Virus record (IMG/VR): IMGVR_UViG_3300045125_000071
Location: 62,001 to 126,000 of that record
DNA: 64,000 nt
Strand: one strand, 5' to 3'
Shown piece by piece: positions 34,767 through 62,100 of this stretch. Position 1 is the first letter of the stretch; every line of letters begins with the position of its first letter. The notes below the pieces were generated by a model. It was not told where the DNA came from, did no database searches, and saw only the letters and a list, made by a program, of their open reading frames with translations. A program made the translations under genes and the position numbers.

Positions 34767-35183
34767 ATGGTGAAAATTTATCTCGATGATGTTAGAGTTC
34801 CAGTTGATAAAACGTGGATTGTTGTTAAAAACTATGATGAATTTGTATTAAAAATAAGATATATTGGTTTAGAAAATATACAATTAATTTCTTTAGACCA
34901 TGATTTGGGTAAGCAAGCAATGCAAGAATACTATAATAATGTACAAAATAATTACACATTAAATTATGATAATATCGTCAATGAAAAAACTGGTTATGAT
35001 TGCGCAAAATTTTTAGTGGAACAAAGCATTGACAAAAATATACCGCTACCTAAAATCCAGGTTCATTCAGCAAATCCAATAGGTTCTGCAAATATTATAG
35101 GTTATGTAAATAATTATTTGAAAAATTGTAGACTACCACAAACTTGCGATAGGGCTATTGTTCAACATTTTATAAACTATTGA
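34767..35183 (+). CDS. Cyclic-phosphate-processing receiver (cREC)-like protein
   Basis: IYLDDVR.P, ISLDHDLG, KTGYDCAKFL, VHSANPIG. Confidence 0.75.
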   Translation: MVKIYLDDVRVPVDKTWIVVKNYDEFVLKIRYIGLENIQLISLDHDLGKQAMQEYYNNVQNNYTLNYDNIVNEKTGYDCAKFLVEQSIDKNIPLPKIQVHSANPIGSANIIGYVNNYLKNCRLPQTCDRAIVQHFINY

Positions 35184-39815: not shown

Positions 39816-39888
39816 AGTCAGGTGGCGAAATTGGCAGACGCAATGTGAAACGGTACAACTTATACTAAAGTAACATGGAGAAGTCCAC
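39816..39888 (+). ncRNA. Truncated tRNA-scaffold element (5' part only)
   Basis: 70/73 identical to 43040-43112 but lacks T arm and 3' acceptor strand. Confidence 0.75.
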
Positions 39889-40094
39889 GTACTATTAAAA
39901 TAATTAAAAACAAAAAGGTATGAAAAAATATCATTTAACAATTTTGAGAAACGATAACTATGAAACTGTTTTTGGTGAAATGAGTTCAATAGTGAGTTTC
40001 TTACTGATAGAGAAAGAAATTGGAAATAAAACCCATATATTGTATTCGCGAGAACTAACTGAGTCAGAGTGGGAATTAGTTAAGTAAAACAAAT

Positions 40095-40223
40095 AGTCAG
40101 GTGGCGGAACGGGGTATCAGATACTCTTTGGCAGACGCTAATATGCTGAGTCCTTTTGGAGCTAACATCCTTTCGCGATTGGATTAAATGGGGGACGTAT
40201 AGGTTCGAATCCTGTCCTGACTA
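40095..40223 (+). ncRNA. tRNA-scaffold RNA 1 (129 nt)
   Basis: AGTCAGG...CCTGACT-A; D loop with inserted hairpin; ATAGG-TTCGAAT-CCTGT; branched insert. Confidence 0.85.
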
Positions 40224-40401
40224 CAAAAACTATAAATCGTGGAAAAAATAAAAGTAAAATATCCTCACTTATTAAAGTTCCTAATAGGGTTTTACAAGCC
40301 TCTTTAGCTTTTTATATGATTTATCATTTTAACTTTTTACACTTAATAGGTTATTTAATTTTATTAATAAGTCTTCATAGTATTAAAATGTATAACATAA
40401 T

Positions 40402-40425
40402 CAGGTTCGAATCCTGCCCTGACTA
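40402..40425 (+). repeat. Orphan 3' half of a tRNA-scaffold element
   Basis: CAGGTTCGAATCCTGCCCTGACTA with no upstream AGTCAGG partner. Confidence 0.75.
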
Positions 40426-40441
40426 CTTAAAATTTAAAAAA

Positions 40442-40633
40442 ATGGAAAGATATAAGTGTATTCGTAATTATCCTGGTGGACCTGGAAAAGACGTGGTAGT
40501 ATACCATCCACATAAAGAAGTGGCCTATAAGGATAGATATTTCAAACAAAAGAATGAAGAAAATTCTCGTAACTATATTTTTTTTGATGAAGACTACGTA
40601 AAAAAGTTTCCGAAATATTGGAAAAAAATATAA
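40442..40633 (+). CDS. Small hypothetical protein between array elements
   Basis: ATG at 40442 after an A-rich leader. Confidence 0.5.
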   Translation: MERYKCIRNYPGGPGKDVVVYHPHKEVAYKDRYFKQKNEENSRNYIFFDEDYVKKFPKYWKKI

Positions 40634-40641
40634 TCTAAAAT

Positions 40642-40745
40642 AGTCAGGTGGCGTAGTGGTATCGCAGCACCCTCACGGTTGAGACTAACGGCTAATGGCA
40701 CTCTGTATGATAAAGCTGACGCAGGTTCGATTCCTGCCCTGACTG
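40642..40745 (+). ncRNA. tRNA-scaffold RNA 2 (104 nt)
   Basis: AGTCAGG...CCTGACT-G; GCAGG-TTCGATT-CCTGC; insert closed by CAGC/GCTG. Confidence 0.85.
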
Positions 40746-40765
40746 CTAATCATATTATCTTCTTT

Positions 40766-41249
40766 GAAACAACTGTTGGTCAACACTGAACAAGTAACAG
40801 ATAAATCAGGTATGTAGAACCTAAAATTCTATAAAAGAATGGATGGTGTCTACATTGAAATTATCTACAATCCTCAACGTCAAGGTTGGAATTAATGACG
40901 AAATATAAAGGACAAAAACCTTTGCAGCTCCCACTGCTAAAGAGATGGGTAGAAACAAGTGTAGAACTATATTATCTGTTTAGTCTCATGGTTCTAAGAC
41001 ATGAGTAGGGTTTGGGTTGACGTGTAGTTTATTGTAAGAAAACTGAGCAGTACCTTTTATACTGGTACAATTAAATTTCCCGTCTTAGAGGGCGACAGTT
41101 GTTTCTTTCTTATGTGCTTTACACTAGAGATGGTAACACAGAATGTGTGTATTGCAGTCAATAAGATGTGTGTTGTTCTCTTGAGAAAGGAATGAAGGAG
41201 TAACAAGTTTATCGTTAACACCACTGGGGACTTCTCATCCCCATTTTTT
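40766..41249 (+). ncRNA. Large structured ncRNA candidate (about 480 nt), family unassigned
   Basis: Long-range helices 40766-75/41096-105 and 40796-804/40972-80, many local hairpins, no ORF, boxA-like motif upstream, terminator 41225-41249. Confidence 0.7.
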
Positions 41250-41273
41250 CTATTCTGACTAAAAATTAAAATT

Positions 41274-41429
41274 ATGGAAAACGAATTGGAGAAGAAAGAA
41301 AAATGTAAATGTGGTAATTCACCACAAGAATTGCATACATGTCCTTATGCGGAAGATGTACAAGGGGATAGTATAACCTTGTGCAATTGTTGTTCGGATT
41401 GTGAGAATCAATGCATTGCAGACATATAA
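41274..41429 (+). CDS. Small Cys-rich protein (51 aa)
   Basis: MENELEKKEKCKCGN...HTCPYAEDV...LCNCCSDCENQC; below ORF-track cutoff. Confidence 0.6.
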   Translation: MENELEKKEKCKCGNSPQELHTCPYAEDVQGDSITLCNCCSDCENQCIADI

Positions 41430-41590
41430 AAATAGCCAGGTGGTATCAGTTGTTTCTTTTTTATGTGTTAATGTTCATATTTTCTCTTGTTCACGTAACG
41501 TGAACAAAGAAAAATAAAACAGACCCACGCTTCCCATCTCGAAGGATAATGAGAGGGAATAATACGTCCTTTAAGGTCTGTTTTTAATAT

Positions 41591-41720
41591 AGTCAGTGGC
41601 GGAATTGGTTAGACGCGGTAGAGTCCGAAAGGTTAGCACTCTATGACTGCAAGCGAAACTCTGACTGCTAACACAAAGAGGAGTATAATTGCAATGCAGG
41701 TTCGAATCCTGTCCTGACTA
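41591..41720 (+). ncRNA. tRNA-scaffold RNA 3 (130 nt)
   Basis: AGTCAG(G missing)TGGCGGAATTGGTTAGACGC...GCAGGTTCGAATCCTGTCCTGACT-A. Confidence 0.85.
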
Positions 41721-41857
41721 CCGATGGTTAAAGTCCCTACGAGTTGTGACAATTAAAACGATGTTGTCATTATCGAAAGATACCTCACCATAAAACTCTG
41801 GGCAAACTCCCCTAACAGGAAACTGAACGGGTTGACAGCTTGGAAAGACAAGCAAAT

Positions 41858-41947
41858 AGTCAGGTGACGGAATGACATCCGTTAGAAAAGGTGTGAGGGC
41901 GAACGTGGTCGGAAAGCACCTAGTAGGTTCGAATCCTGCCCTGACTG
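41858..41947 (+). ncRNA. tRNA-scaffold RNA 4 (90 nt)
   Basis: Same acceptor and T arm; D stem ACGG/CCGT; insert closed by AGGTG/CACCT. Confidence 0.85.
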
Positions 41948-42065
41948 CTGATTCAGTTTGCCCGTGGTAACGGATTGATGGGAGAAATCCTTGCAATCTT
42001 CTGTAATCAAAATCCAATTATTGTCTCACTGGTAATTGGGCTAAATGTGAGAAAAAACGGGACAT

Positions 42066-42183
42066 AGTCAGGTGGCGGAATGGTGCCAAAGTATAAAACA
42101 AAGGGCAGGACACAAAGTCACTGAACACAGAGGAGAGGTTGAGGAACTCCCATTACTTACAGGTTCGAATCCTGTCCTGACTG
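42066..42183 (+). ncRNA. tRNA-scaffold RNA 5 (118 nt)
   Basis: Same scaffold; multi-hairpin insert closed by AAGTA/TACTT. Confidence 0.85.
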
Positions 42184-42276
42184 CTAAAACAACTAAGTTG
42201 ATTAACACCAGACAGTAACAAGAGGAAGCAGCACTATACCAGTTAAAGTCTGGGATTGTTACCTCATAATCTAAGA

Positions 42277-42342
42277 TATGAGTGGTTTGGGTTAATGTAT
42301 GACAGTTTTGAACAGAGAGTGGTTCGACTCCACTATTCATAC
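42277..42342 (+). pseudogene. Degenerate tRNA-like sequence
   Basis: TATGAGT/ATTCATA acceptor and AGTGG-TTCGACT-CCACT T arm; no credible D or anticodon arm. Confidence 0.4.
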
Positions 42343-42469
42343 TCTACTTAGAAGGCAGCTTAGTTGTTTTAAACTTATACTGGTTTTTGATACCGCTTTA
42401 CCGTTAGGAACGGGTATACCCCAAAACAGAATACAAAATGGTATGACAAGCCTGGAGAGACAGGCAAAT

Positions 42470-42609
42470 AGTCAGGTGGCGGAATTGGTAGACGCAGGGT
42501 CTACCTCAAGCGATTAGAGTATACGAGACGGGTGAAAGTTCCTCATTCCAAGTTGACCACGCTTACCCTTTAAAGGCAATTATACAGGTTCGATTCCTGT
42601 CCTGGACTG
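42470..42609 (+). ncRNA. tRNA-scaffold RNA 6 (140 nt)
   Basis: Leu-type D arm GCGGAATTGGTAGACGC; insert closed by AGGGT/ACCCT; one extra G in 3' strand. Confidence 0.85.
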
Positions 42610-42722
42610 CAAAAAATTAAACATATAGTGTATATCGATAAATGCATCGTTAATTATTTTGGCGATTATGGGTATTGTGTTTTTGGGGTATTGTTACACA
42701 AAAAGGTGGATTATAAAGATAT

Positions 42723-42799
42723 AGTCAGGTGGCTGAATTGGTGACAGAGGCACACCGTTAAACGACGGGTGGATGCGGGTTCGAATCCTGTCCTGACTG
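42723..42799 (+). ncRNA. tRNA-scaffold RNA 7 (77 nt)
   Basis: tRNA-sized but anticodon-position hairpin CCGT-TAAACG-ACGG is non-canonical. Confidence 0.8.
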
Positions 42800-42885
42800 C
42801 TAGGTAAGTTGCAAGTAAATGTCGTGATTCATGAACTTACGACCACTAGAAAGGAGCTGACTGCTGGGAAACGAGACAGCACTAT

Positions 42886-42962
42886 AGTCAGGTGGTGTAA
42901 TTGGTAGCACAACATCCGACAAGGGATGGAGGAGTCTAAAGGTTCGATTCCTGTCCTGACTA
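42886..42962 (+). ncRNA. tRNA-scaffold RNA 8 (77 nt)
   Basis: CATCC-GACAAG-GGATG 6-nt loop lacking U33. Confidence 0.8.
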
Positions 42963-43039
42963 CGATTAGAGGTATAGGGGTACCCTGAGGCGAAGTACAA
43001 GCCATGGTCACTGAATGTAAACCAACTCTAAACTAATTT

Positions 43040-43140
43040 AGTCAGGTGGTGAAATTGGCAGACGCAATGTGAAACGGTACAACTTATACTAAAGTAGCTT
43101 GGAGAAGTCCACTTTACAGGTTCGAATCCTGTCCTGACTA
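43040..43140 (+). ncRNA. tRNA-scaffold RNA 9 (101 nt)
   Basis: Same scaffold; insert duplicated at 39816. Confidence 0.85.
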
Positions 43141-43157
43141 CAAAAAACAAAAAAACT

Positions 43158-43337
43158 ATGAGCAACAATTCAAGTTCCAGTGGTATTGGTTTACCAACAA
43201 TTCTTTTTATTGTATTTTTGGTATTAAAACTAACTAATTACATTGATTGGTCATGGTGGTGGGTAACTTCTCCATTATGGATTTCTGCAATATTATATAT
43301 CATTCTCATTGTTGTTATTGAGAAAATTTTTCGTTGA
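43158..43337 (+). CDS. Small membrane protein (59 aa)
   Basis: MSNNSSSSGIGLPTILFIVFLVLKL...IDWSWWWVTSPLW. Confidence 0.7.
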   Translation: MSNNSSSSGIGLPTILFIVFLVLKLTNYIDWSWWWVTSPLWISAILYIILIVVIEKIFR

Positions 43338-43355
43338 CTTTGAAAATTAAATAAA

Positions 43356-43583
43356 ATGGACTATTCGGATGCAAGAATAAAAGCATTGTATCTTAAATGG
43401 AAGACATCTACATGTGACCAAGGAGAAAAGTGTTGGTGTCGTGTGATTAAATGCGAAGAATCATTGATGTATAAGGAGTATGAAGGTGATGATGAACAAG
43501 AATACAATGTGGTGGGCCCAGGGCTATTGGACAAAGAAACTGTTGAACATATTGTCAAACTTCACAACGATTCAATTAAGTGA
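43356..43583 (+). CDS. Hypothetical protein
   Basis: 75-aa ORF with C.QGEKCWC motif. Confidence 0.55.
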   Translation: MDYSDARIKALYLKWKTSTCDQGEKCWCRVIKCEESLMYKEYEGDDEQEYNVVGPGLLDKETVEHIVKLHNDSIK

Positions 43584-43599
43584 ATCTCAAAAAACAAAC

Positions 43600-43945
43600 A
43601 TGAACAAAGTCGTAATTAACGGAAACACAGTAAGTGGTAATTTTGCTGCCGACAACCTTATTATAATTAACGGAAAGGTTTTTGTCAATGGGAAAGATGT
43701 TACACCTGATGCAAAAGAAATAAACATTACCATTCAAGGGTCTGTTGAAAAATTGGAGGTCGATGCTTGTTCAAAAATAACCATTGATGGTGATGTCCAT
43801 AATGTCACAACCAAAAGCGGTGATGTCGATATTTCGGGGAACGTTAGCGGTAATGTTCAAACCATGTCTGGGTGATGTTGATTGCGGAAATGTCAGTGGT
43901 TCGATTTCAACAATGAGTGGTGACATTAAGCACAAACATATTTAA
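43600..43945 (+). CDS. Beta-solenoid-like hypothetical protein (one indel near 43870)
   Basis: Repeating GDV/GNV..V.T.SG units. Confidence 0.6.
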
Positions 43946-43952
43946 ATAAAAC

Positions 43953-44068
43953 AGTCAGGTGGCGGAGTGGTAGACGCAGAGTTTAGGGTTACTGATGTAG
44001 ATAGGTAACTGGTCACGCAGCGAGATAGCGTACTCTTTCTATCGCAGGTTCGATTCCTGTCCTGACTA
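43953..44068 (+). ncRNA. tRNA-scaffold RNA 10 (116 nt)
   Basis: Insert closed by AGAGT/ACTCT with GTTAC/GTAAC hairpin. Confidence 0.85.
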
Positions 44069-44137
44069 CTAATCTTTTTTAACTTCAGATTAACCATAAA
44101 AAGAAAAGTTAATGACATCTTGGAAAGACAAGAAAAT

Positions 44138-44227
44138 AGTCAGGTGGCGCAAGTGTGAAGAATAATCACCATGGGTAAGCGAGCTGTGGAAACACGGAGG
44201 TTGTGGGTTCGAATCCCACCCTGACTA
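44138..44227 (+). ncRNA. tRNA-scaffold RNA 11 (90 nt)
   Basis: Compensatory T stem GTGGG/CCCAC; hairpin in D loop; anticodon position is CTGTG-GAAA-CACGG. Confidence 0.85.
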
Positions 44228-44241
44228 CAAAAATAAAACTT

Positions 44242-44394
44242 ATGAAAAAGTATAACGTCCTATTGGGTATTATTGGGTATATTTTGACAGTGTGTGTAGC
44301 GCCAGCATTGTTTATTGAAAAACATTACATATTAGCACTAATATCTTTTATAGGGGGAATTGCAGTAATCGATTATAACAGAGGTGGCAATTAA
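44242..44394 (+). CDS. Small membrane protein
   Basis: Two hydrophobic segments. Confidence 0.5.
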   Translation: MKKYNVLLGIIGYILTVCVAPALFIEKHYILALISFIGGIAVIDYNRGGN

Positions 44395-44400
44395 TTACAT

Positions 44401-44547
44401 AGTCAGGTGGCGCAATGGTAGACGCTGTAAAAGTAAGATATGGGGATTGTGCACTCGGTGTTATCCTACGCACAAGGCTTAGATAGTTTTAGCAAAAACG
44501 GAAAGTCTTACAAAACTATTATACAGGTTCGAATCCTGTCCTGACTG
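44401..44547 (+). ncRNA. tRNA-scaffold RNA 12 (147 nt, longest)
   Basis: Same scaffold; branched insert. Confidence 0.85.
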
Positions 44548-44562
44548 CAAAAAATTAAAAAT

Positions 44563-44778
44563 ATGAAACAACCTAAAATACAAATTACGGACATCCACGG
44601 AGAAGATTGGGGTGTTAAAAAAGTCACACATCTTGGTTGGAATATTAATGGAAACTTAGTCGAAATAAAAGTTGACTTTATGGGTAATTATTACGACTTG
44701 ATGGTAATGTATGATATTGATTGTACTGGTACATTTACCAATATTCATGGTAACTTAAAAGGTAAACTAATTTTTTGA
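44563..44778 (+). CDS. Hypothetical protein
   Basis: 71-aa ORF between elements. Confidence 0.55.
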   Translation: MKQPKIQITDIHGEDWGVKKVTHLGWNINGNLVEIKVDFMGNYYDLMVMYDIDCTGTFTNIHGNLKGKLIF

Positions 44779-44788
44779 ATAAAAAAAC

Positions 44789-44895
44789 AGTCAGGTGGCG
44801 GAATGGTAGACGTAGAATCGGAAACCTAATGAGGTAGTGAACGAAAGATTTGGATAACTGCGGTTATCGTACAGGTTCGATTCCTGTCCTGACTG
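44789..44895 (+). ncRNA. tRNA-scaffold RNA 13 (107 nt)
   Basis: Variable-arm-like GATAAC-TGCG-GTTATC; anticodon arm replaced. Confidence 0.85.
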
Positions 44896-44909
44896 CAAAA
44901 AGGAAAAGT

Positions 44910-45173
44910 ATGATACTTTGGAAGTGGCAAAATGGAAGACAACATAATTGCGAATATCAGAAGTTCCCACTATGGTATTTTAAGTTATGGAAGTTTGGGT
45001 TTGATTGTTACATTCTCAGTTATAATGAGAACCAAACATTACCCAAACATAAAGACCCTATTGTGAATGGAAAACACTGGAGATTGAATATCGGATATGG
45101 TAATTCAAATTTTCTTTGTGAAAAATTAATTTTTGGTAAAAAAGATTGGATTATTATCCGTATATTTGTTTAG
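44910..45173 (+). CDS. 2OG-Fe(II) oxygenase-like small protein (3' end frameshifted)
   Basis: Y......LPKHKDP....HWRLNI (HxD motif). Confidence 0.45.
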   Translation: MILWKWQNGRQHNCEYQKFPLWYFKLWKFGFDCYILSYNENQTLPKHKDPIVNGKHWRLNIGYGNSNFLCEKLIFGKKDWIIIRIFV

Positions 45174-45258
45174 GCCTGATTTATATGAACATTCCCTTCA
45201 TATAATTGGGAAAACAAGAAAACTCTCTATTGGGTTTGCAAAGTATATGTAAGTAAAT

Positions 45259-45374
45259 GGTCAGGTGGCGAAATAGAGCAGACGCATGATGATAAAGTAG
45301 GGTCCGAATGTACTCGGAGGAAATTGATTCAATTAGGTTGCAAACTAATATAGGTTCGAATCCTGTCCTGACTA
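45259..45374 (+). ncRNA. tRNA-scaffold RNA 14 (116 nt)
   Basis: GGTCAGG/CCTGACT; three-hairpin insert (TCCGA/TCGGA, AATTG/CAATT, ATTAG/CTAAT). Confidence 0.85.
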
Positions 45375-45491
45375 CGAGGGAAATAATCTTAACCAGCCTC
45401 AAATGTTGAATCTTGTTGACCATTCCTGGTTTATACAAGTGCGAACGGGCCTAATGATGGTAAGGTTGACAGCGGGGAAAGACCCGACCAT

Positions 45492-45577
45492 GGTCAAGTA
45501 GCTTATAATGGGTATATGGGTATTAACTCTTCCTTTAAGTAGGTTTAGCATTGTGGGTTCAAATCCCATCTTGACCG
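45492..45577 (+). ncRNA. Divergent tRNA-like element (86 nt)
   Basis: GGTCAAG/CTTGACC acceptor, GTGGG-TTCAAAT-CCCAT T arm, no canonical anticodon arm. Confidence 0.65.
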
Positions 45578-45591
45578 CAAAATAAAATGTT

Positions 45592-46206
45592 ATGAAAAGC
45601 AAGACAGTGGAACGCATCATGGGAGAAATGGAAAAAGACCCGTGGTATGTCAAACTAAGAAGGTGGTGGAATCTGAAGGTGTGGACATGGAAATGTTTAT
45701 CCAGGAAATATTGGGACAAAACACATTCTGGTTATATCTTTAGAAAAAGAATCATGATTTCAAAAGAAACATTGGAAGCAGTTCGGGTTGGAATACTAAC
45801 GGACAAGCAATTGAATGAAGCAATTGAACACTATACTAAGTTAGAAGAACTTCTAAGATGTCATGGAGAAGTATATTCTCTTGTATGGAGCAATGTTTTT
45901 TATATACTTCATACGCTTGAAGGATATCAAACATCAAGAAAAAAGAGGGTTGATTGGGAAGGGATATACAATAACCTGATGGTGGAGGTAGTATATCTGG
46001 AGTTTGGAATCATCATAGTAATGCCAATCGTAAAAGGAGTTGTCCACGGAACCATCTTCTCCTTTCCTTTTTCATATAAAACAATTATTATGTTTTCAAA
46101 AACAAGAGTCAAGTTCAGACTTAAAGGAAGTGACGAAATCCAATTGGGGTTTTTGGAAAAAAATAAAGAATACAAAAAACAAATATCGTGTTTTATCCAT
46201 GGATAA
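45592..46206 (+). CDS. Hypothetical ORF(s); probably several small genes read through
   Basis: 204-aa ORF with internal ATG-led segments. Confidence 0.35.
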   Translation: MKSKTVERIMGEMEKDPWYVKLRRWWNLKVWTWKCLSRKYWDKTHSGYIFRKRIMISKETLEAVRVGILTDKQLNEAIEHYTKLEELLRCHGEVYSLVWSNVFYILHTLEGYQTSRKKRVDWEGIYNNLMVEVVYLEFGIIIVMPIVKGVVHGTIFSFPFSYKTIIMFSKTRVKFRLKGSDEIQLGFLEKNKEYKKQISCFIHG

Positions 46207-46270
46207 AAAATCTGGATATTGTATTTCTTTGTTAGATATGTTGGAAAAATTTAAATATTTAATAGAACAT

Positions 46271-46345
46271 AGTCAGGGTGGCTGAATGGCAACGGCAGTT
46301 CACGAGGTGTTACGAAGAATGCAGGTTTGAATCCTGTCCTGACTG
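46271..46345 (+). ncRNA. tRNA-scaffold RNA 15 (75 nt)
   Basis: AGTCAGG/CCTGACT-G; T loop TTTGAAT; non-canonical central hairpin. Confidence 0.8.
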
Positions 46346-49702: not shown

Positions 49703-50383
49703 GTGACTTTTTTAAATTTTGACCATACTTATAATAAGTATGGCAAATTTAAACACAAAAAAAAGTATCATTTTATTTACAAAACAACAAATTTAAAAAC
49801 TGGTCATTTTTATATTGGGATGCACTCAACCAATAATTTAAATGATGGTTATTTGGGTAGTGGTAAAAGATTAACACGTTCCATAAGAAAGTATGGTAAA
49901 GAAAATTTTAAATTAGACATTTTGGAATTTTTACCAGATAGAAAAACATTAGAATTAAAAGAAAAAGAATTAGTCAATGAAGAACAATTAAAAGACCCAT
50001 TATGCATGAATATATGCGTTGGGGGTCAAGGTGGTTTCATATCAATAGAAGGATGCACTAAAGGTGGTGTAATCGCAGCAAAAATTCATGTTGATAGAAT
50101 AAAAAATGATTCAGAATATAGGGAAAAACATATATTGAGGTTTAGTGAAAAAGTAAAAAAACTTTGGAGAGATGGTGTTCTTAAACAACACGATTTTAGA
50201 GGTGGAAAACGGAAAGAAGAAACTAAAAGAAAAATAAGTGAAACAAATAAAATAAAACAAAAAGGAATTTTAAATTCACAATTTGGAACTCGATGGATTA
50301 CTGATGGTTCTGAAAATAAAAAAATAAAAAATACCGAGACAATACCAAATGGATGGGTCTTAGGTAGAAAAATGAAAAAATAA
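49703..50383 (+). mobile_element. GIY-YIG (Seg-like) homing endonuclease, paralogue of 39094
   Basis: FIYKTTN...FYIGMHST...DGYLGSG...GGQGG...GWVLGR. Confidence 0.88.
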
Positions 50384-51639: not shown

Positions 51640-52104
51640 ATGGTTGACAAATTCAGAACGTTATATGGTAGAACAATTCCCAACATTGTTGAGTATATAA
51701 AAAATTTCATGTCTGAAAATCCGAATTCAGAATTATTAATTGGCGCGGATTCCCAATCTTATGAGAATAGGATAACAAAATACGGTATTGTTATTGCACT
51801 TTATACACAAGGTAAAGGGGCGCACGTTGTTTGCATGAGAGAAATTGTTCCCATTGAACATAATATGCAAATGAGATTAATGAATGAAGTTTGGAAATCG
51901 GTTGAGGTTGCTGAATTCTTAAAGGAAAACAATTTACCGAAACCTAAATTCATTGATATTGATTTGAATCCAGACCCAAAATATAAATCAAATACAATAT
52001 TGCGCCAGGCTATTGGTTTAGTTGAGGGTATGGGTTATAATGTGAGATACAAGAAGAACGGCGCAGCTATTCAGTATGCGGCAAATCATTTGGTAAGAAT
52101 TTGA
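51640..52104 (+). CDS. RNase H-like YkuK/DUF458 family protein
   Basis: LIGADSQ...GKGA...RLMNEV.KS...IDIDLN...KSN. Confidence 0.75.
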   Translation: MVDKFRTLYGRTIPNIVEYIKNFMSENPNSELLIGADSQSYENRITKYGIVIALYTQGKGAHVVCMREIVPIEHNMQMRLMNEVWKSVEVAEFLKENNLPKPKFIDIDLNPDPKYKSNTILRQAIGLVEGMGYNVRYKKNGAAIQYAANHLVRI

Positions 52105-53129: not shown

Positions 53130-53975
53130 AATGGGCGGTCTATAGTCCAGTAATGACTCGAAAGAGTTGTTATAAAAATAAACTATGAAAGTAGTATAAA
53201 GTGGTCTCCTTGGTTAAAAGAGACTGCGGTTTATCGCAAGATGAACTTGAGTAGAAAAGCGAGACATCGTTTGACCCGTAGTAGCGAGGGTAACACTGTA
53301 GTGAAAGGGGTTGAATGACTGGGCGATGTGGGTCGTCTGGTTGAGGTGGGAACACCAATAAGAGTAACTCGTAGGGTAGTTGCAAGAAATATGGTCATCC
53401 AACTATATGATTGCGGTATCCAATACAATGGGTGTCTTAAAGTTGAAAGACATGATGAAAAACAGGTGGTGCTGTTATCATCCTTAGTTAGAATCTACCA
53501 AGGTTCTGATTATGAAGAAATCCAAAAGTATGGAGGTAGGGATATCTCAGAGAGTAGTTGTGTATTTTGCGGTTCAAAAGACTGTGAAGCACTGGTGACG
53601 GACCACTACTTTCAAAATCCACAAACCAAAAACTGTTACTTTTGACTAACAAGTTTAAAAAAGCAGGAAAAGTGTCCGTCAGTCATCAGAGACAGGTGGC
53701 TACTCAGTAACGAGTTGTTCGTTGCCACAAAGGGTCCCAAGCCCAATGTGATTTTTGTGAAAGTTCTCTAATCCCGCAAGGATGAGTTGGTGAGGCATCA
53801 TCGAAGAGCAGCGATTAGCAAGAGAGTATCTGGTGACTCAAGGATTGGTTAATCTAATTGACCGCCATTGATTGGTACTACTCAAAAGGTAGTGGATAAG
53901 AAGAGAACCTCAAAAGGGATAATGCTTCGAAAGTCAATCACAAGAACTTGTAATCTCAGAGTTTTTACTTTAATT
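53130..53975 (+). ncRNA. Giant structured ncRNA (about 850 nt), probably GOLLD-like
   Basis: Own promoter and terminator; GGCGGTC(53134-40)/GACCGCC(53860-66) long-range helix; numerous hairpins; phage tRNA-island context. The family name is inference from size and context. Confidence 0.65.
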
Positions 53976-56042: not shown

Positions 56043-57515
56043 TTATTTTATCAAATATTTCATTATTCTTTTCATCTCGTTGATTTGATTATCAACTTGT
56101 GTTCTCTTTGCAATTTCAATTGCATCATCATAACTTAAATTAGGATTTTCATAATATGCATCCTCAACCGCAGCCATAGCAGCACCAATAGCTTTACCTT
56201 GTTTAAACCCGATGTTTATCAAATCATTTCCATTAATTGGTAATTTTGGCTTATTCTTATCCAATTGCATATTTAATTTTTCTAATCTATTCTTAACAAT
56301 TTCAATTTGTTCTGGCATGGAAGAATGTTCGCTATGCGCAATATTGTCCGCATGAATTAAATCCAAAATATCCTCAAGATTTTGACCAACTGTAACAACG
56401 AATTTCCTTAATGTCTTATCTGATATATTTGCAGCATCTGGTCCTCCATGTTTTAATCTCATATGGTTTTTTACACCAGCAACGACAGCATCAATCAATT
56501 CATTTGGATATTTTAACCTTATCATAATTTTTTTGACCATATCAGCCCCAACTTCCTCATGTTGATAAAAATGGACCGAACCTTCTGGTGATACAGTCTT
56601 CGTTAGAGTCTTGCCAATATCGTGAAATAACCCCATTAGACGCGTTTTAAGCCTGGGCGGTGTCTTTGATAGAACATCCATGCTGTGCATGAAAACATCG
56701 TCTTTATGGTGCGCATTTTGCCTCATACCAACAGCAGAATCAAACTCCCCTATGATATGTGACAATAGACCCGTAACCTTCATTAATCTGAACGCTTTTC
56801 TTGGGTCAGTAGTCATTAACATCTTATCTATTTCATCTCTAATTCTTTCAGATGAAATTGTTTTAATAAGTTCAGCATTCTTTTTAATATTTTTTATTAC
56901 GCTGGTTTCCATATCGAACCCATATTTGCAAGCAAATCTAATTGCCCTTAACATCCTCAATGGGTCTTCTTTGAATATTAATTCAGCGTCCTGCGTGGTT
57001 CTTATAATACCATTTTTGATGTCATCAATACCTTTACCACTAATATCTAAAATTTCACCTGTTGAAACATTTTTTAATAATGAATTTATAGTTAGGTCTC
57101 GCCTCAAAGCATCGTCCTCAATTTTACCAGCAACAACTTCAGGTTTTCTTGAACCAGGTGTATATTCTTCTTTTCTTGGTGCAACAAATTCTAATTCAAT
57201 TGATGGTAAATCTTGATTGTTATTATTAAGTGACAATTTGGCAGTTCCAAACTTAGGATATATGACAGGATTGCTGTCTTGTTTAAAATTACCCAATTCT
57301 TTACCTAACCATGTTGCGAAATTTATACCAGCATCTAAATTACCGATAACAGTAAAATCTAAATCCTTTGCTGGTTTACCCATTATTTCATCTCTCACAG
57401 CACCACCAGCTAAAAATACTTTATTCTCCCATTCTGTACCTTGAATTTTATTTTTCAAAAATTCTAATACAGTATATTCATCTGTTGATTCTAAAATTAA
57501 TTTTTTATAATACAT
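56043..57515 (-). CDS. cca: CCA-adding tRNA nucleotidyltransferase with HD domain
   Basis: LAGGAVRD...KDLDF, RKEEY..GSRKP loop, EDDALRRDLTINSL, EDPLRMLRAIRFA, ERI.DE, HH..DV..HS, FHDIGK. Confidence 0.92.
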   Translation of the reverse strand: MYYKKLILESTDEYTVLEFLKNKIQGTEWENKVFLAGGAVRDEIMGKPAKDLDFTVIGNLDAGINFATWLGKELGNFKQDSNPVIYPKFGTAKLSLNNNNQDLPSIELEFVAPRKEEYTPGSRKPEVVAGKIEDDALRRDLTINSLLKNVSTGEILDISGKGIDDIKNGIIRTTQDAELIFKEDPLRMLRAIRFACKYGFDMETSVIKNIKKNAELIKTISSERIRDEIDKMLMTTDPRKAFRLMKVTGLLSHIIGEFDSAVGMRQNAHHKDDVFMHSMDVLSKTPPRLKTRLMGLFHDIGKTLTKTVSPEGSVHFYQHEEVGADMVKKIMIRLKYPNELIDAVVAGVKNHMRLKHGGPDAANISDKTLRKFVVTVGQNLEDILDLIHADNIAHSEHSSMPEQIEIVKNRLEKLNMQLDKNKPKLPINGNDLINIGFKQGKAIGAAMAAVEDAYYENPNLSYDDAIEIAKRTQVDNQINEMKRIMKYLIK

Positions 57516-58366: not shown

Positions 58367-58552
58367 ATGGTAAAGAAATTTTTAGATTTTTTGAAATTGT
58401 CTTTTGCAAAAACACCAATTACTAAAAATGTAGTTGATGTCGAATTGAAAAATTCCGTATCTTTGTCATCTGAACCAGCAACAGATGTTGTTGAAAAAAA
58501 GAAAAGAGGTAGGAAGAAAAAGAAGAGTCTGCACAATAATATATGGGGGTGA
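58367..58552 (+). CDS. Small hypothetical protein
   Basis: Late motif upstream; basic KKKRGRKKK tail. Confidence 0.45.
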   Translation: MVKKFLDFLKLSFAKTPITKNVVDVELKNSVSLSSEPATDVVEKKKRGRKKKKSLHNNIWG

Positions 58553-58941
58553 CAGGTTTTGACAGGTAGTTGAATGGCAAACAGGCATGTCGGAGCAGAT
58601 TTAACTCCGTATAATCTGAATCAAAAAACAAAAGGCGAAGTTTATCGCAACATGGAAATTGCAGGTCTTCTTGCAACTTCTAAAGTGGCTGCCTAATTAG
58701 CACCTACTTAACGGGTCGATGGACACATAACCTTGGAACAGAAGTCCCTACGGTGTGGTTTCTACCAAAAAAGGAATAAAGGTCTCGTTAGGGGTACTAC
58801 CGATTAAAGTGAACCCCCACAGTTGTAGGTGATGATGGAAAAATAAGAACCTTCTATTTGTTGGTTATGAACTAATCAAATAAGCATGTAGGCTGTTTGT
58901 TAATCATTACTCTGGACTTGGCTTCAATGCCAACACCTCCA
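58545..58941 (+). ncRNA. ssrA: tmRNA; predicted tag (A)GEVYRNMEIAGLLATSKVAA at 58634-58696
   Basis: GGGGGTG/CACCTCC-A acceptor with G3:U70, 5' GACAGGTTTTGAC, T arm, tag ORF ending AA-TAA. Confidence 0.92.
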
Positions 58942-58944
58942 CTC

Positions 58945-59112: not shown

Positions 59113-62100
59113 TTATAAACTTTGGGCTAAATTTTTTAAAAATTGTAAACCAAAAAATTTTCCAAAACCACCTGTTTTAGTGGGCGCATTTTCGGACCTA
59201 GAACCTATCATAGAAAGTTCATCTTCTGTTGTAACATTACCAACTAAATTTGAAAATGCTGGATTTCTAGCTAATTCATCTCTAAAATCAGCATCATTTT
59301 CAAATCTTTCTTCAAATGTTGTTATGCTCGGTATACCAAACGTATCTAATAAATTATTTGCCATTATAAATTTTCGAATATATGCCTTTCTATCTCTTGA
59401 ACCTTTGTATACAATGTTCCACCAATAAGATAACCAATTAGATGGTACTTTACCATTTTTTTCTAAATATTTTGCAAGTCTATCACCTCTAAAATATTTT
59501 TTTACACCCATAGCAACTGGTCCAGTACCAGTAACGGTTTTTAAAAGTGAACCAGTATTTGTTTCTAACTCTTTACCTATTGATTTACCAATATTAATTG
59601 GTTTTTTAAATATTCTTTCTAATACACTAGCATGTTGCTTAATAGATTCTCTCATACCTTCAGCCGCCTTTACACCAATGCCTGGAACCTTTTCTACCTG
59701 ATTGATTGTTTTACCAATTAAAGGGCTATCAATGTGGTTAGCTAACCTCATATACATTTTTTTCGCTTCAGGATTTTTTCTAAATATCTTATTAAATCAT
59801 CAGTACTCCTAAGAGCCAAACTAGTTGCTTTTCTACCTTTTTAAAAGATATATAAATGGTTTTGCTATTATATCACCAACAGTTGGGATTAATGCAATTA
59901 ACATAAGACCCGCATAAAGATATTTTCCTTGTAACAAATATCTGATAATAAGAATTATATCGGCTATTTCACCTATAACTGGTACAAAACCGACAACCAT
60001 TAAGGCATTCTCTATAAAATCTTCATTTATTAATATCTTTTCGTTTTTCATTCATGAATAATTTTACATAATTGATTTGCTATTGCTTCTGATGTTGGTG
60101 TCTTTCTTATAACATCACCAACAATATTGCCTAATCCTATTTCTGGAATATCTGACCAATTGTATTCATCATAACTTAACATAGGTGTATATTTTTTACC
60201 TTCTTTTTTTGCAAGTTTAGCTTTTTCTAACTCAATCTCATCTTCCATTTTTGTTTTCTTAAACCTCAACTTCTTATTCATTATATCTCTAATTATTACT
60301 TCTAAAATTGCATCTAATATATTCGGTAAATGTTTATTACAATATTCTCTGTTTTTGAATGGTATAAGTAAATCTTTATATGATAAATCCGCAAGTGCTA
60401 TTCCTAATTTTGTTGAAACTGATGGGCTGAAACCTATATATTCTAAAATGAATTTGATAGCAAATTCTTTTGCCATTGAATACATAGAGTCTTTAAACGC
60501 CTGACCATAATCAAATTTTGTGTTTGTTAAATCTTGTATGGAATTGCTTGCTTTATCAATATAATCAGTTATTTCATTAATATCATATCCCTCATTGATT
60601 AAATTAACAGCAACTATTGCATGTTTTTTAATCAATTCGTTATATGTGTTAGTTTCATTAATAGCAAAAGATTCCTCTAAAATCTCATTTCTTTTTTGAA
60701 TAAGATTTTTTGATACAATGTTTTTAACACTTAGATTTATTTGATTATTATTTCGCATTTGGTTATAACTTATTTTAACGAATCTGGTGTTTTTATTGGT
60801 TCTGGATTAAACTTACGATACCCTTGAGTTTGATAGTCTTTTTAAATTTATCCATAACCGCACGTTTTATATTTTCCGATGCTTCAGGTTCAGTTGTTTG
60901 TTTACCAGGACAATTTGCCATTATAGTATCATACATATCTTTTGTAATTACTTCTTGACCAGTTGTTGTTCCAAATAATTTTCTTCTTGTTTTTGGTCCA
61001 AAATATCCCCAAGCTGGTTCGATACCCTTACATATTTGAATATCTTTAATCATATCATTTTTACAACCATATGGTATATTATCTTTAATATCTGGACAAT
61101 CGCGGTATCTTGGTTCAGTACTTTTACGTTTTTTCAGAATCATCGTCAGTTTTGACTGGTTCTTCACCAAATTTAAAATTAATTTTACTTAAATCATCAT
61201 CTGTTGTTTCTCCGCCACTAACAACTTCACCACTTTCACCAGATTCTATTTTATCAATTAAATCTAATAATTGTTTTTTGATTCTGGAACCTTGTGCGGT
61301 TGTCATATATGATGATTTCACATCACTTCTTAACTTTGTTTTTGGCAAGACCAGCATCATAATATGCGTCTAAAAATTTTTGTCCTTTATTTGCGTTACT
61401 ATATCGCAAGAGTGTATTATATGCGTTTATCAAATTATTAGTAAATACTGGAGTATCTAACCAATCTATCATTTTTTCAACATCAGCATCCATAGATTCG
61501 TCAGATAATTCTGGATTAGTGGTTGCTTCGTTAATGAGATTTAAAAATATGTTTTGTAATTTATTTTTTCCATTTTAAAATGTTTTATTTACAATTATAA
61601 CTTGTTGATTCCCCAGTTTTTTGCGTTTATTACGTTTCCGTTTAGATAAAATTTAAGTCCATCTGGATATGTTGGTGTTTTAATAAATGCATATCCTTCA
61701 TCAAATAATTGAGCTTTATTTGCATCAATTAATTCAGCTACACAAGGTGGAAACCCTTCTGATTTTTTTGGTGCAGGTCCTTTATTTGGGTCGTCACTTC
61801 TATTCCACACAAGAAACGCTGGAATACCAATAACGGCTAATGCAGTAGCTGCTGTTTTATATGGATTTTTCTTAATGAAGTCTTTCCAATTACCAATAGA
61901 AAATTTACCACCGCCTCCAGGACCAGGACCAGGTGTTGGTCCACTACCTCCTGGTCCTGGTGTTGGTCCACTACCTCCAGATGCGGCACCTTGCGCTGCT
62001 TTTGTTTCAGCTGCAACAGCAAATTGTCTACTTTTAGCTTTGTTTTTTTCTATTATTTTTATTATATCATCACCATTCAATACTGTTTTAGAATCCATTA

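Follow-up and report, generated by a model that had tools for sequence, protein, structure and literature searches.

The five small hairpins that stand in front of the tRNA-like elements in this phage genome are genuine copies of a conserved RNA hairpin, composed of a UGACA flank, a covarying stem and a GAAAGA loop, and the same motif is present in the non-coding regions of many unrelated phages. It matches no family in Rfam, and any function attributed to it below is inferred. The sequence analysed (the window) is a stretch of 64,000 nucleotides, positions 62,001 to 126,000 of the IMG/VR record IMGVR_UViG_3300045125_000071, a phage contig of 251 kb. The main new result is that the motif is not specific to the tRNA-like array in which it was first noticed: it also lies before ordinary tRNAs, before ribosome-binding sites and before terminators, or serves itself as a terminator-like hairpin.

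The hairpin family and its conservation

A first-pass annotation, based on the sequence alone, described five hairpins with covarying stems, a conserved GAC leader and a conserved purine loop, each (with the exception of one before a divergent element) ending exactly 4 nt before a scaffold element. This observation is confirmed, since all five hairpins are where it placed them (Table 1). In shuffled sequence, a hairpin with a GRARGA loop and a stem of at least 4 bp is expected only 0.6 times per window (maximum 3). Moreover, a covariance model of the motif (R1) recovers exactly these five copies, at 64, 63, 49, 42 and 28 bits (E 2e-13 to 2e-4), and nothing comparable elsewhere in the 251 kb contig. 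Two details must nevertheless be corrected. The distance of exactly 4 nt holds only in this window; across 92 unique array-linked copies the linker to the first base of the tRNA or tRNA-like element is 4 nt in 44 and 5 nt in 39, so that the stem ends at -5 in all the window copies and at -5 or -6 in 83 of the 92 relatives. In addition, the conserved leader is UGACA rather than GAC.

Table 1. Coordinates of the hairpin copies, tRNA-like elements and spacers in the window
Feature	Coordinates	Strand	Composition	Supporting observations
Copy 1	41833-41857	+	TGACA 41833-37 (GACA 41834-37); stem GCTTG 41838-42 with CAAGC 41849-53; loop GAAAGA 41843-48; linker AAAT 41854-57; next element AGTCAGG at 41858	R1 63.3 bits, E 4e-13; folds as predicted, z -2.7
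Copy 2	42444-42469	+	TGACA(A) (GACA(A) 42445-49); stem GCCTG 42450-54 with CAGGC 42461-65; loop GAGAGA 42455-60; linker AAAT; next element at 42470	R1 49.3 bits
Copy 3 (variant)	42858-42885	+	TGAC (GAC 42859-61); stem TGCTG 42862-66 with CAGCA 42877-81; long loop GGAAACGAGA; linker CTAT; next element at 42886	R1 28.1 bits; the same GAAACGAGA loop variant occurs in L160 (L numbers designate the relatives)
Copy 4	44113-44137	+	TGACA (GACA 44114-17); stem TCTTG 44118-22 with CAAGA 44129-33; loop GAAAGA; linker AAAT; next element at 44138	R1 64.4 bits; bases 44113-44136 match Bacillus phages MG-B1 and LY3 exactly over 24 nt
Copy 5	45467-45491	+	TGACA (GACA 45468-71); stem (G)CGGG 45472-76 with CCCG(A) 45483-87; loop GAAAGA; linker CCAT; next element GGTCAAG at 45492	R1 41.9 bits
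tRNA-like element after copy 1	41858-41946	+	89 nt; acceptor AGTCAGG/CCTGACT; T arm GGTTCGAATCC; non-canonical middle	Not called by ARAGORN
tRNA-like element after copy 2	42470-42608	+	139 nt; 3' end CCTGGACT carries one extra G	
tRNA-like element after copy 3	42886-42961	+	76 nt	ARAGORN "tRNA-???" with a 2-nt anticodon; Rfam tRNA 37.9 bits
tRNA-like element after copy 4	44138-44226	+	89 nt	Rfam tRNA 34.4 bits
Divergent tRNA-like element after copy 5	45492-45577	+	Acceptor GGTCAAG	ARAGORN tRNA-Val(aac); Rfam 31.6 bits
Spacer before copy 1	41720-41832	+	Non-coding; the preceding tRNA-like element ends at 41719	An RNA-library contig covers 41698-42008
Spacer before copy 2	42346-42443			
Spacer before copy 3	42799-42857			
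Spacer before copy 4	44068-44112			
Spacer before copy 5	45374-45466			Spacer family conserved with compensatory changes in L040 and L065

The consensus is (N)UGACA, a stem of 4-6 bp closed by G-C, a GAAAGA loop and then an A-rich tail. Among the 92 array-linked copies the loop is GAAAGA in 83 and the lead is TGACA in 84. The stems covary strongly: in 70 array-linked copies 99.1% of cells are paired, with 58 double-change cells, and 0 of 500 shuffles were as good. The covariation persists in a viral sample of 82 copies taken without any pairing requirement (the unbiased sample), where 91.7% of cells are paired, 95 cells show double changes and all 4 of the 4 variable pairs covary, whereas slid controls give 19-37%. 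The array-linked copies contain 15 G·U pairs against a single A·C, so the fold is on the + strand, presumably the transcribed one. No Rfam 15 family gives a hit on the hairpins at E up to 5 in the window, nor at E up to 0.5 (up to 1 for MG-B1) in the loci of the cultured phages.

Genomic context and distribution

In the window the motif is tied to the 5' end of tRNA-like elements, and in 71 of the 92 array-linked copies the 3' end of a tRNA or tRNA-like element lies 30-143 nt upstream. However, three tRNA-tRNA spacers in the same array lack it. A second, unrelated hairpin class (GAGGA-CUUCUCA-UCCUC) sits at the same distance from the following element and, in leaders without the motif, the best hairpin ends 3-5 nt before +1 in 32% of cases, against 8% in shuffles. 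The window also encodes a phage CCA-adding enzyme. In the unbiased sample, the copies lie 1-8 nt after ORF stops, 3-8 nt before tRNAs or directly before Shine-Dalgarno sequences, or are followed by T-runs or terminators.

The same module occurs before ordinary tRNAs with other acceptor stems, before ORFs and terminators, and in long unannotated gaps of cultured phages: P1, the lambdoid mEp390, the Bacillus phages MG-B1 and LY3, the crAss-like cr272_1 and the Acinetobacter phage Alexa, all six without a tRNA-like array, and others such as Pokken. It is shared by phages of Firmicutes, Bacteroidales, Proteobacteria and cyanobacteria, as well as by uncultured jumbo phages. Nevertheless, no protein family is shared at blastp 1e-4 by four motif-bearing phages (G000, G024, G020 and G006) with GC contents of 31-47%, although short peptides would escape such a search.

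The first-pass interpretation, a protein-binding or processing signal (a boxB-like antitermination hairpin or a leader-processing determinant) that belongs to the array system, is partly supported. An invariant loop and 5' flank set against a covarying stem is the signature of a specifically recognised RNA signal, but the distribution described above does not support the idea that the hairpin belongs to the array as such. The boxB-like reading remains possible, although the defining features of a lambda-type site were not found.

Possible roles of the hairpin

Our preferred explanation, which we hold only tentatively, is that the hairpin is a cis-acting RNA module, transcribed as part of long non-coding or polycistronic phage transcripts, that marks the boundary just upstream of the next functional RNA unit and acts as a punctuation signal for processing or stability. 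In this window that unit would be a tRNA-like element, whose 5' end is presumably cut by RNase P 4 nt after the stem. The cut would leave the upstream RNA ending in the hairpin plus AAAU-3'OH, a tail too short for 3' exonucleases to load, and would place a stable stem at the edge of the RNase P leader-binding region. In this view the invariant flank and loop imply that something recognises the sequence itself and, since the phages concerned share no detectable protein, the reader is most likely a universally conserved host machine. What the analysis establishes is the structure, its strand, its conservation and its positions; that the motif is transcribed, that RNase P cleaves beside it and is affected by it, that it stabilises or directs processing, and what reads it, are all inferences.

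Several findings speak for this view, namely the covariation and conservation of the structure, the positions of the copies, the tRNA-like elements and CCA-adding enzyme in the window, the hammerhead ribozyme of cr272_1 (see below), and the absence of a protein family shared by the four carrier phages. Contigs from RNA libraries cover the hairpin regions, but these are assembled contigs that may hold DNA and they provide no direct evidence of RNA ends. Stable stem-loops close to the cleavage site slow bacterial RNase P about 10-fold and order the processing of polycistronic pre-tRNAs (PMC10731613). On the other hand, a simple stability or processing barrier does not need an invariant loop and flank, no nuclease or binding partner was identified, and copies directly before ribosome-binding sites or terminators fit other roles equally well. 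Furthermore, copy 1 of MG-B1 and its orthologue in LY3 sit inside what looks like a genuine sigma-A promoter, whose transcript would not contain the hairpin.

The main rival, which is close to the first-pass idea but which we consider rather unlikely, is a nascent-RNA signal acting on the transcribing RNA polymerase, either directly like a miniature put or through a general Nus-type factor, to suppress pausing or termination and so let long, highly structured non-coding arrays and downstream genes be transcribed through. A universal partner would explain why phages of different phyla that share no detectable protein carry the motif. Copies lie 8-25 nt upstream of intrinsic terminators or are followed by T-runs (L291, L303, L304, L308, L297, L311, L312), and copies lie in early or regulatory regions: between the repressor and the early-left genes in mEp390, in the P1 ban operon and in the MG-B1/LY3 early promoter region. 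The 5-bp stem with a purine-rich GA-loop resembles boxB, and HK022 put shows that RNA alone can reprogram RNA polymerase through the conserved beta' zinc-binding domain (PMC9378689). Against this, the motif, at 22-27 nt, is far smaller than put, there is no boxA, both mEp390 copies lie in one locus rather than one per early operon, and the window has five copies within 3.7 kb with no terminators between them. Nor is the fixed 4-5 nt distance to tRNA 5' ends explained.

A further possibility, somewhat less likely still, is that the hairpin binds a small phage-encoded protein, such as an N-like arginine-rich peptide, a Cas6-like protein or another nuclease, too short or too divergent for BLAST to detect. 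The conservation pattern is typical of protein-hairpin recognition, as in boxB-N or coat-protein operators, and the arrays carry many small unannotated ORFs. However, apart from the absence of a shared protein family among the four carrier genomes, the most frequent neighbour families are GIY-YIG endonucleases and DUF458, and the latter is present in only 8 of 28 records and in 3 of 11 near-complete genomes. The motif also occurs in 27 kb phi29-like genomes with very few genes.

It seems very unlikely that the hairpin is part of a small self-cleaving ribozyme or of another larger structured RNA whose remaining parts we did not recognise. About 14 invariant nucleotides is a lot for a 22-nt hairpin and, in several spacer families, a helix ends exactly at UGACA with compensatory changes (TCAAC:GTTGA to CCAAC:GTTGG, and TCAAT:ATTGA to TCGATTT:AAATCGA); about 12 of 59 unbiased copies have a tight hairpin abutting UGACA, and a hammerhead lies in the same locus in cr272_1. 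Nevertheless, this helix is not supported overall (mean length 4.9 against 4.6 in shuffles), there is no match to the hammerhead core by eye, and no Rfam ribozyme family hits the motif.

The least likely reading, already largely refuted as a general explanation, is a sigma-70-type promoter (TTGACA-N17-nATAGT), with TTGACA as the -35 element, the hairpin as the 17-nt spacer and nATAGT as a -10 element overlapping the first three bases of the tRNA-like element: although the window copies score 9-10 of 12 in a promoter scan, the spacing clusters at 16-18 nt in array-linked copies and one orthologous copy in MG-B1 and LY3 has TTGACA-N18-TAAAAT/TATACT with an extended TG and an A/T-rich upstream region, transcription would start inside the D arm and destroy the acceptor stem. 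The -10-like hexamer is supplied by the AT of the leader plus the AGT of the scaffold and disappears when the downstream tRNA has another acceptor (only 2 of 10 such cases keep A2 and T6), the base before TGACA in the unbiased sample is most often C rather than T, and the strand-specific G·U excess points to RNA. The reading fails outside this array, and only copy 1 of MG-B1 and its orthologue in LY3 have the full set of promoter features. The motif also occurs in a crAss-like phage, and Bacteroidales hosts are not known to use TTGACA promoters; the present phage uses no Shine-Dalgarno sequences (9 of 207 ORFs), which suggests a Bacteroidota-type host.

A more speculative and doubtful reading, though one still compatible with the evidence, is that UGACA-stem-GAAAGA is an undescribed, phylum-spanning phage RNA signal read directly by a universal host machine, be it RNA polymerase, a Nus factor or RNase P. 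It would be a protein-independent "mini-put/boxB", or a processing handle, that phages place before tRNAs, tRNA-like RNAs, genes and terminators to control how long non-coding RNA islands are transcribed and cut into units. Such islands, which hold tRNAs, tRNA-like RNAs, GOLLD/ROOL, tmRNA and ribozymes, are abundant, and how they are expressed is largely unexplained; the motif would give a handle on how they are transcribed, punctuated or stabilised, in a question that is directly testable because it is present in tractable phages such as P1, a lambdoid coliphage and phi29-like Bacillus phages. If the reader is RNA polymerase or RNase P, the motif would also be a compact portable regulatory part.

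Comparison with characterised RNA elements

Like the lambda-type nut site, in which N binds the boxB hairpin, the motif is a short hairpin with a 5-bp stem, a purine-rich loop starting GA and a conserved 5' flank, on the presumed transcribed strand of phages and sometimes upstream of terminators. Judged from sequence alone, its loop is a hexaloop, GAAAGA, while boxB has a GNRA-like purine pentaloop; its flank, UGACA, directly abuts the stem, whereas boxA is CGCUCUUA set 8 nt away. There are up to five clustered copies rather than one per early operon downstream of PL and PR (in mEp390 the two lie 212 nt apart on one strand), it occurs in phages of several phyla, including phi29-like and crAss-like ones, and no N-like protein was found in a blastp comparison of four carrier genomes, which short peptides would escape. 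The put RNA of HK022 similarly needs no phage protein and has a universal partner, which is one way to explain a cross-phylum distribution, but it is about 70 nt long with two long irregular stems and an RNA triplex (PMC9378689). The present motif is a single 16-nt hairpin plus flanks, and no copy was found in the HK022 immunity and early region (23.5-31.5 kb).

The window copies do have the arrangement of the pre-tRNA leader stem-loops that modulate bacterial RNase P, a stable stem within a few nucleotides of the predicted cleavage site of a tRNA-shaped substrate in a polycistronic tRNA transcript. Those stems are not a conserved sequence family, however, whereas this motif has an invariant loop and flank and also occurs where there is no tRNA. 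Intercistronic stabiliser hairpins (REP elements, the T4 C(UUCG)G hairpins) and intrinsic terminators are likewise short stable hairpins between genes, and a minority of relatives are followed by a U-run and would act as terminators (L297, L311, L312, L129, L150, L175). The window copies are followed by an A-rich tail or by CTAT or CCAT instead, and none was listed by a terminator scan. REP elements are host-chromosomal and genus-specific, but this motif is shared, with the same loop, across phages of different phyla. A CRISPR repeat or Cas6 handle does not fit, since stems differ between copies in one genome and the spacing in the window is irregular (414-1355 nt).

Finally, RAGATH-type motifs, RNAs reportedly found near self-cleaving ribozymes in phage non-coding loci (Weinberg et al. 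2015), include small conserved motifs of unknown function in such islands. No RAGATH family in Rfam 15 matches the hairpin, but in cr272_1 a RAGATH-1 hammerhead lies 125 nt upstream of the first copy.

The tRNA-like array and its hairpins

The 251 kb viral contig from which the window (bases 62001-126000) is taken has 31% G+C and is about 75% complete by CheckV. Besides three ordinary tRNAs, the window carries a plus-strand array of tRNA-like elements and fragments that alternate with small ORFs, the ORFs stopping about 8 nt before an element and starting about 17 nt after one. The elements share the acceptor stem AGTCAGG/CCTGACT, a tRNA-Leu-like D arm and a canonical T arm, while their middle regions are 74-146 nt in total length and mostly non-canonical. 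One element is split: its 5′ half is nearly identical to a complete element over about 73 nt and then breaks off, and a lone 3′ half (T arm plus acceptor) lies 500 nt downstream, with an ORF and a complete element in between. DNA contigs of related phages join the conserved 5′ part to other T arms, and this looks like cassette shuffling through the conserved ends. Several further genes are encoded nearby, in an RNA-centred island (see table). Only 9 of 207 ORFs have a Shine-Dalgarno-like sequence, which suggests a Bacteroidota-type host. A scan of bacterial genomes, made with the array-linked pattern alone, gave 3 hits, all on short MAG contigs, and so did not identify the host.

All five hairpins are where the first-pass annotation had placed them in the window, and each ends 4 nt before a tRNA-like element; hairpins of this kind are expected 0.6 times per window by chance. 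A covariance model built from relatives finds exactly these five in the whole contig, at 64 to 28 bits, and the ordinary tRNAs, the tmRNA and GOLLD have no such leader. The accompanying interpretation, a protein-binding or processing signal that belongs to the array system, is partly supported: the motif is not specific to the array, and a boxB-like role is close to the main rival of the reading that we prefer.

Coordinates of features in the window and in other motif-bearing loci
Feature	Position	Strand	Description
Array	window 39816-46344	+	17-19 tRNA-Leu-derived scaffold elements and fragments; identical acceptor, D and T arms, arbitrary middle regions
Split element	window 39816-39890 and 40395-40424		5′ half and lone 3′ half
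Element resembling the split 5′ half	window 43040-43139		nearly identical over about 73 nt
Second hairpin class	window 41225-41243		GGGGA-CTTCTCA-TCCCC, followed by a T-run
Further tRNA-like fragment	window 42260-42345		T arm GGTTCGACTCC, different acceptor; precedes the spacer of motif copy 2
Match to a Bacillus phage copy	window 44113-44136		24 nt, exact
RNA-centred island	window 53550-53962, 58545-58944, 56043-57515(-), 34767-35183, 51640-52104, 49703-50383		GOLLD RNA (53550-53962; 308 bits), tmRNA (58545-58944), CCA-adding enzyme with an HD domain, cREC_REC protein, DUF458 RNase-H-like protein, SegE-like GIY-YIG endonuclease
crAss-like phage cr272_1 (NC_055903)	locus L253, 270-342		RAGATH-1 hammerhead ribozyme, 73 bits, above the gathering score
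Phage P1 (NC_005856)	71175-71197; locus L374, 1201-1223		motif copy
Phage mEp390	locus L375, 989-1010		motif copy 1
Locus L268	5126-5181	-	tandem or paired motif copies
Locus L293	3504-3678		tandem or paired motif copies
Complete 62 kb phage (46.5% G+C)	G024:C1:25073-25168 (locus L048)		element behind the motif

Conservation of the array-linked form

Three pattern scans of IMG/VR gave about 220 loci and 92 unique copies followed by an AGTCAGG-type element, the prevalence from our scans being a lower bound. The consensus is (N)TGACA, a 4-6 bp stem closed by G-C, the loop GAAAGA and then a 4- or 5-nt A-rich linker ending in U. The lead is TGACA in 84 of 92 copies and the loop is GAAAGA in 83 of 92, with the variants GAATAGA, GAAAGTA, GAAACGAGA and GAGAGA. 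The linker is 4 nt in 44 copies and 5 nt in 39, so the spacing of exactly 4 nt claimed in the first-pass annotation is local to this window. On 70 copies, 99.1% of cells pair and 58 cells carry changes on both sides; no shuffle of 500 reaches this and slid controls pair at 10-41%. G·U pairs outnumber A·C by 15 to 1, so the fold belongs to the plus strand, the strand of the tRNA-like RNAs. In 71 of 92 copies another tRNA(-like) 3′ end lies 30-143 nt upstream, and the motif therefore usually closes a short non-coding spacer between two tRNA-shaped units. Some of these spacer families are themselves conserved with compensatory changes, and the spacer of motif copy 2 is conserved in another locus, L028.

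A second, unrelated hairpin (CACAACACAG-GAGGA-CUUCUCA-UCCUC) occupies the same position, 4-6 nt before an AGTCAGG element, in more than 12 other viral loci; the window carries a member of this class as well. Moreover, among 183 scaffold leaders without the motif, drawn from loci that had been chosen by motif-containing patterns, the best hairpin ends 3-5 nt before +1 four times more often than in shuffles. A stem at -5 or -6 is therefore a general feature of these leaders.

Occurrence of the motif outside the array

Short BLAST queries against GenBank phages and pattern searches of whole records found the motif in unannotated gaps of cultured or complete phages. Bacillus phage MG-B1 has 2 copies and LY3 has 3, one copy being a 24-nt exact match to window 44113-44136; the crAss-like phage cr272_1 has 3 copies within 260 nt; Acinetobacter phage Alexa and the lambdoid mEp390 have 2 copies each; and P1 and P7 have one copy between trnI and ban, with the loop GAAGAGU. 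Further carriers are Pseudomonas Medea1, Cronobacter ESP2949-1, Stenotrophomonas Pokken and Klebsiella P7641. In the four records with two copies (mEp390, MG-B1, cr272_1 and Alexa) the copies are clustered on one strand, and in the annotated loci the motif has the orientation of the neighbouring genes. P1 and mEp390 copy 1 share a longer conserved stretch, GGCGAT(T/A)CGGTG-TGACA-stem-GAAGAG(T/A)-stem, about 50 nt of which recur in many temperate enterobacterial phages, including Stx phages, phiV10 and SPN1S; this may be a larger element built around the hairpin.

To sample the motif without asking for pairing, we scanned IMG/VR for TGACA-N4-GGAAAGAC-N4-A, which returned more than 120 stretches. 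Of 85 matches, 65 have fully complementary N4, against about 2% expected by chance. On all 82 unique matches, 91.7% of cells pair and all four variable pairs covary, with 95 double changes and 0 of 500 shuffles as good. The contexts are varied: nine ARAGORN tRNAs with assorted acceptor stems start 3-8 nt downstream, plus several tRNA-likes; four copies run into T-runs; several are followed within 25 nt by a terminator; many lie 16-40 nt before an ORF start and two sit directly before a Shine-Dalgarno sequence; and several lie 1-8 nt after a stop codon. The tandem or paired copies of loci L268 and L293 are directly upstream of a Shine-Dalgarno sequence and start codon, which hints at a role in the 5′ UTR of some mRNAs.

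In the window the motif reads TTGACA-N17-(A/C)ATAGT, and a sigma-70 promoter was at first an attractive reading. However, the -10-like hexamer is made of the generic AU leader plus the first three bases of the scaffold, and it vanishes when the next tRNA has another acceptor stem. Transcription would, moreover, start inside the D arm; in the unbiased sample the base before TGACA is most often C; the motif is present in a crAss-like phage; and the G·U asymmetry points to RNA. The promoter thus fails as a general reading, with one exception: an orthologous copy in MG-B1 and LY3 has a well-placed extended -10 in both phages, although the stems differ (GTGG/CCAC against ATTTG/CAAAT), and that copy probably overlaps a real promoter.

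Candidate readers and possible roles

Four carrier genomes (31-47% G+C, 62-251 kb) share no protein family at blastp 1e-4. The commonest neighbour families are GIY-YIG endonucleases and DUF458 (PF04308), but the latter is present in only 8 of 28 records and was rejected as a partner. No Rfam family matches the hairpin, and a search of the literature found no description of it, although the catalogue of about 10,000 viral candidate structured RNAs (PMC10690425) could contain it. In cr272_1 the RAGATH-1 hammerhead lies 125 nt upstream of the first copy, in the same unannotated region as the three copies; the motif therefore lives in loci that already contain RNA-cutting elements.

What the analysis shows is an RNA-strand hairpin with an invariant loop and flank, its boundary positions, and a cross-phylum spread without a shared phage protein. 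From these facts we infer, tentatively, a cis-acting punctuation signal that would be read by a universal host machine. In the window the simplest chain would be that RNase P cuts the tRNA-like element at +1, leaving the upstream RNA with a 3′-terminal hairpin and a 4-nt tail, the stem sitting at the edge of the leader-binding site. Stems in that position are known to slow RNase P and to order cleavage (PMC10731613). Nevertheless, this does not explain why the loop and flank are invariant, and the RNA evidence is limited to assembled contigs of two metatranscriptomes, which give neither ends nor strand.

The main rival, which on present evidence seems unlikely, is a nascent-RNA signal acting on RNA polymerase. 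HK022 put is a precedent for it (PMC9378689), but the motif was not found in the HK022 region examined, and those lambda-type and put-type defining features that could be examined were absent. A binding site for a phage-encoded protein is somewhat more doubtful, and a larger RNA or ribozyme considerably more so; a general P1 helix abutting UGACA is supported in some spacer families but not overall. A promoter is the least likely of all as a general explanation, and an N4-type template-strand hairpin promoter was rejected since the G·U excess is on the non-template strand.

The leader UUGAC can also pair with GUCAG of the tRNA-like 5′ strand, and this anti-acceptor pairing is predicted in all five window copies. 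UGACA is, however, kept before tRNAs with unrelated acceptor stems and where there is no tRNA at all, so the pairing cannot be the reason for its conservation. Nor is any anticodon enriched among the hairpin-preceded elements, 74 of 92 of which are not called as tRNAs. When ARAGORN does call AGTCAGG-type elements in relatives, they carry random and often 2- or 4-nt anticodons; these are not ordinary decoders. In the complete 62 kb phage G024, ARAGORN reads the element behind the motif as a class-II tRNA with anticodon UUA, a possible ochre suppressor.
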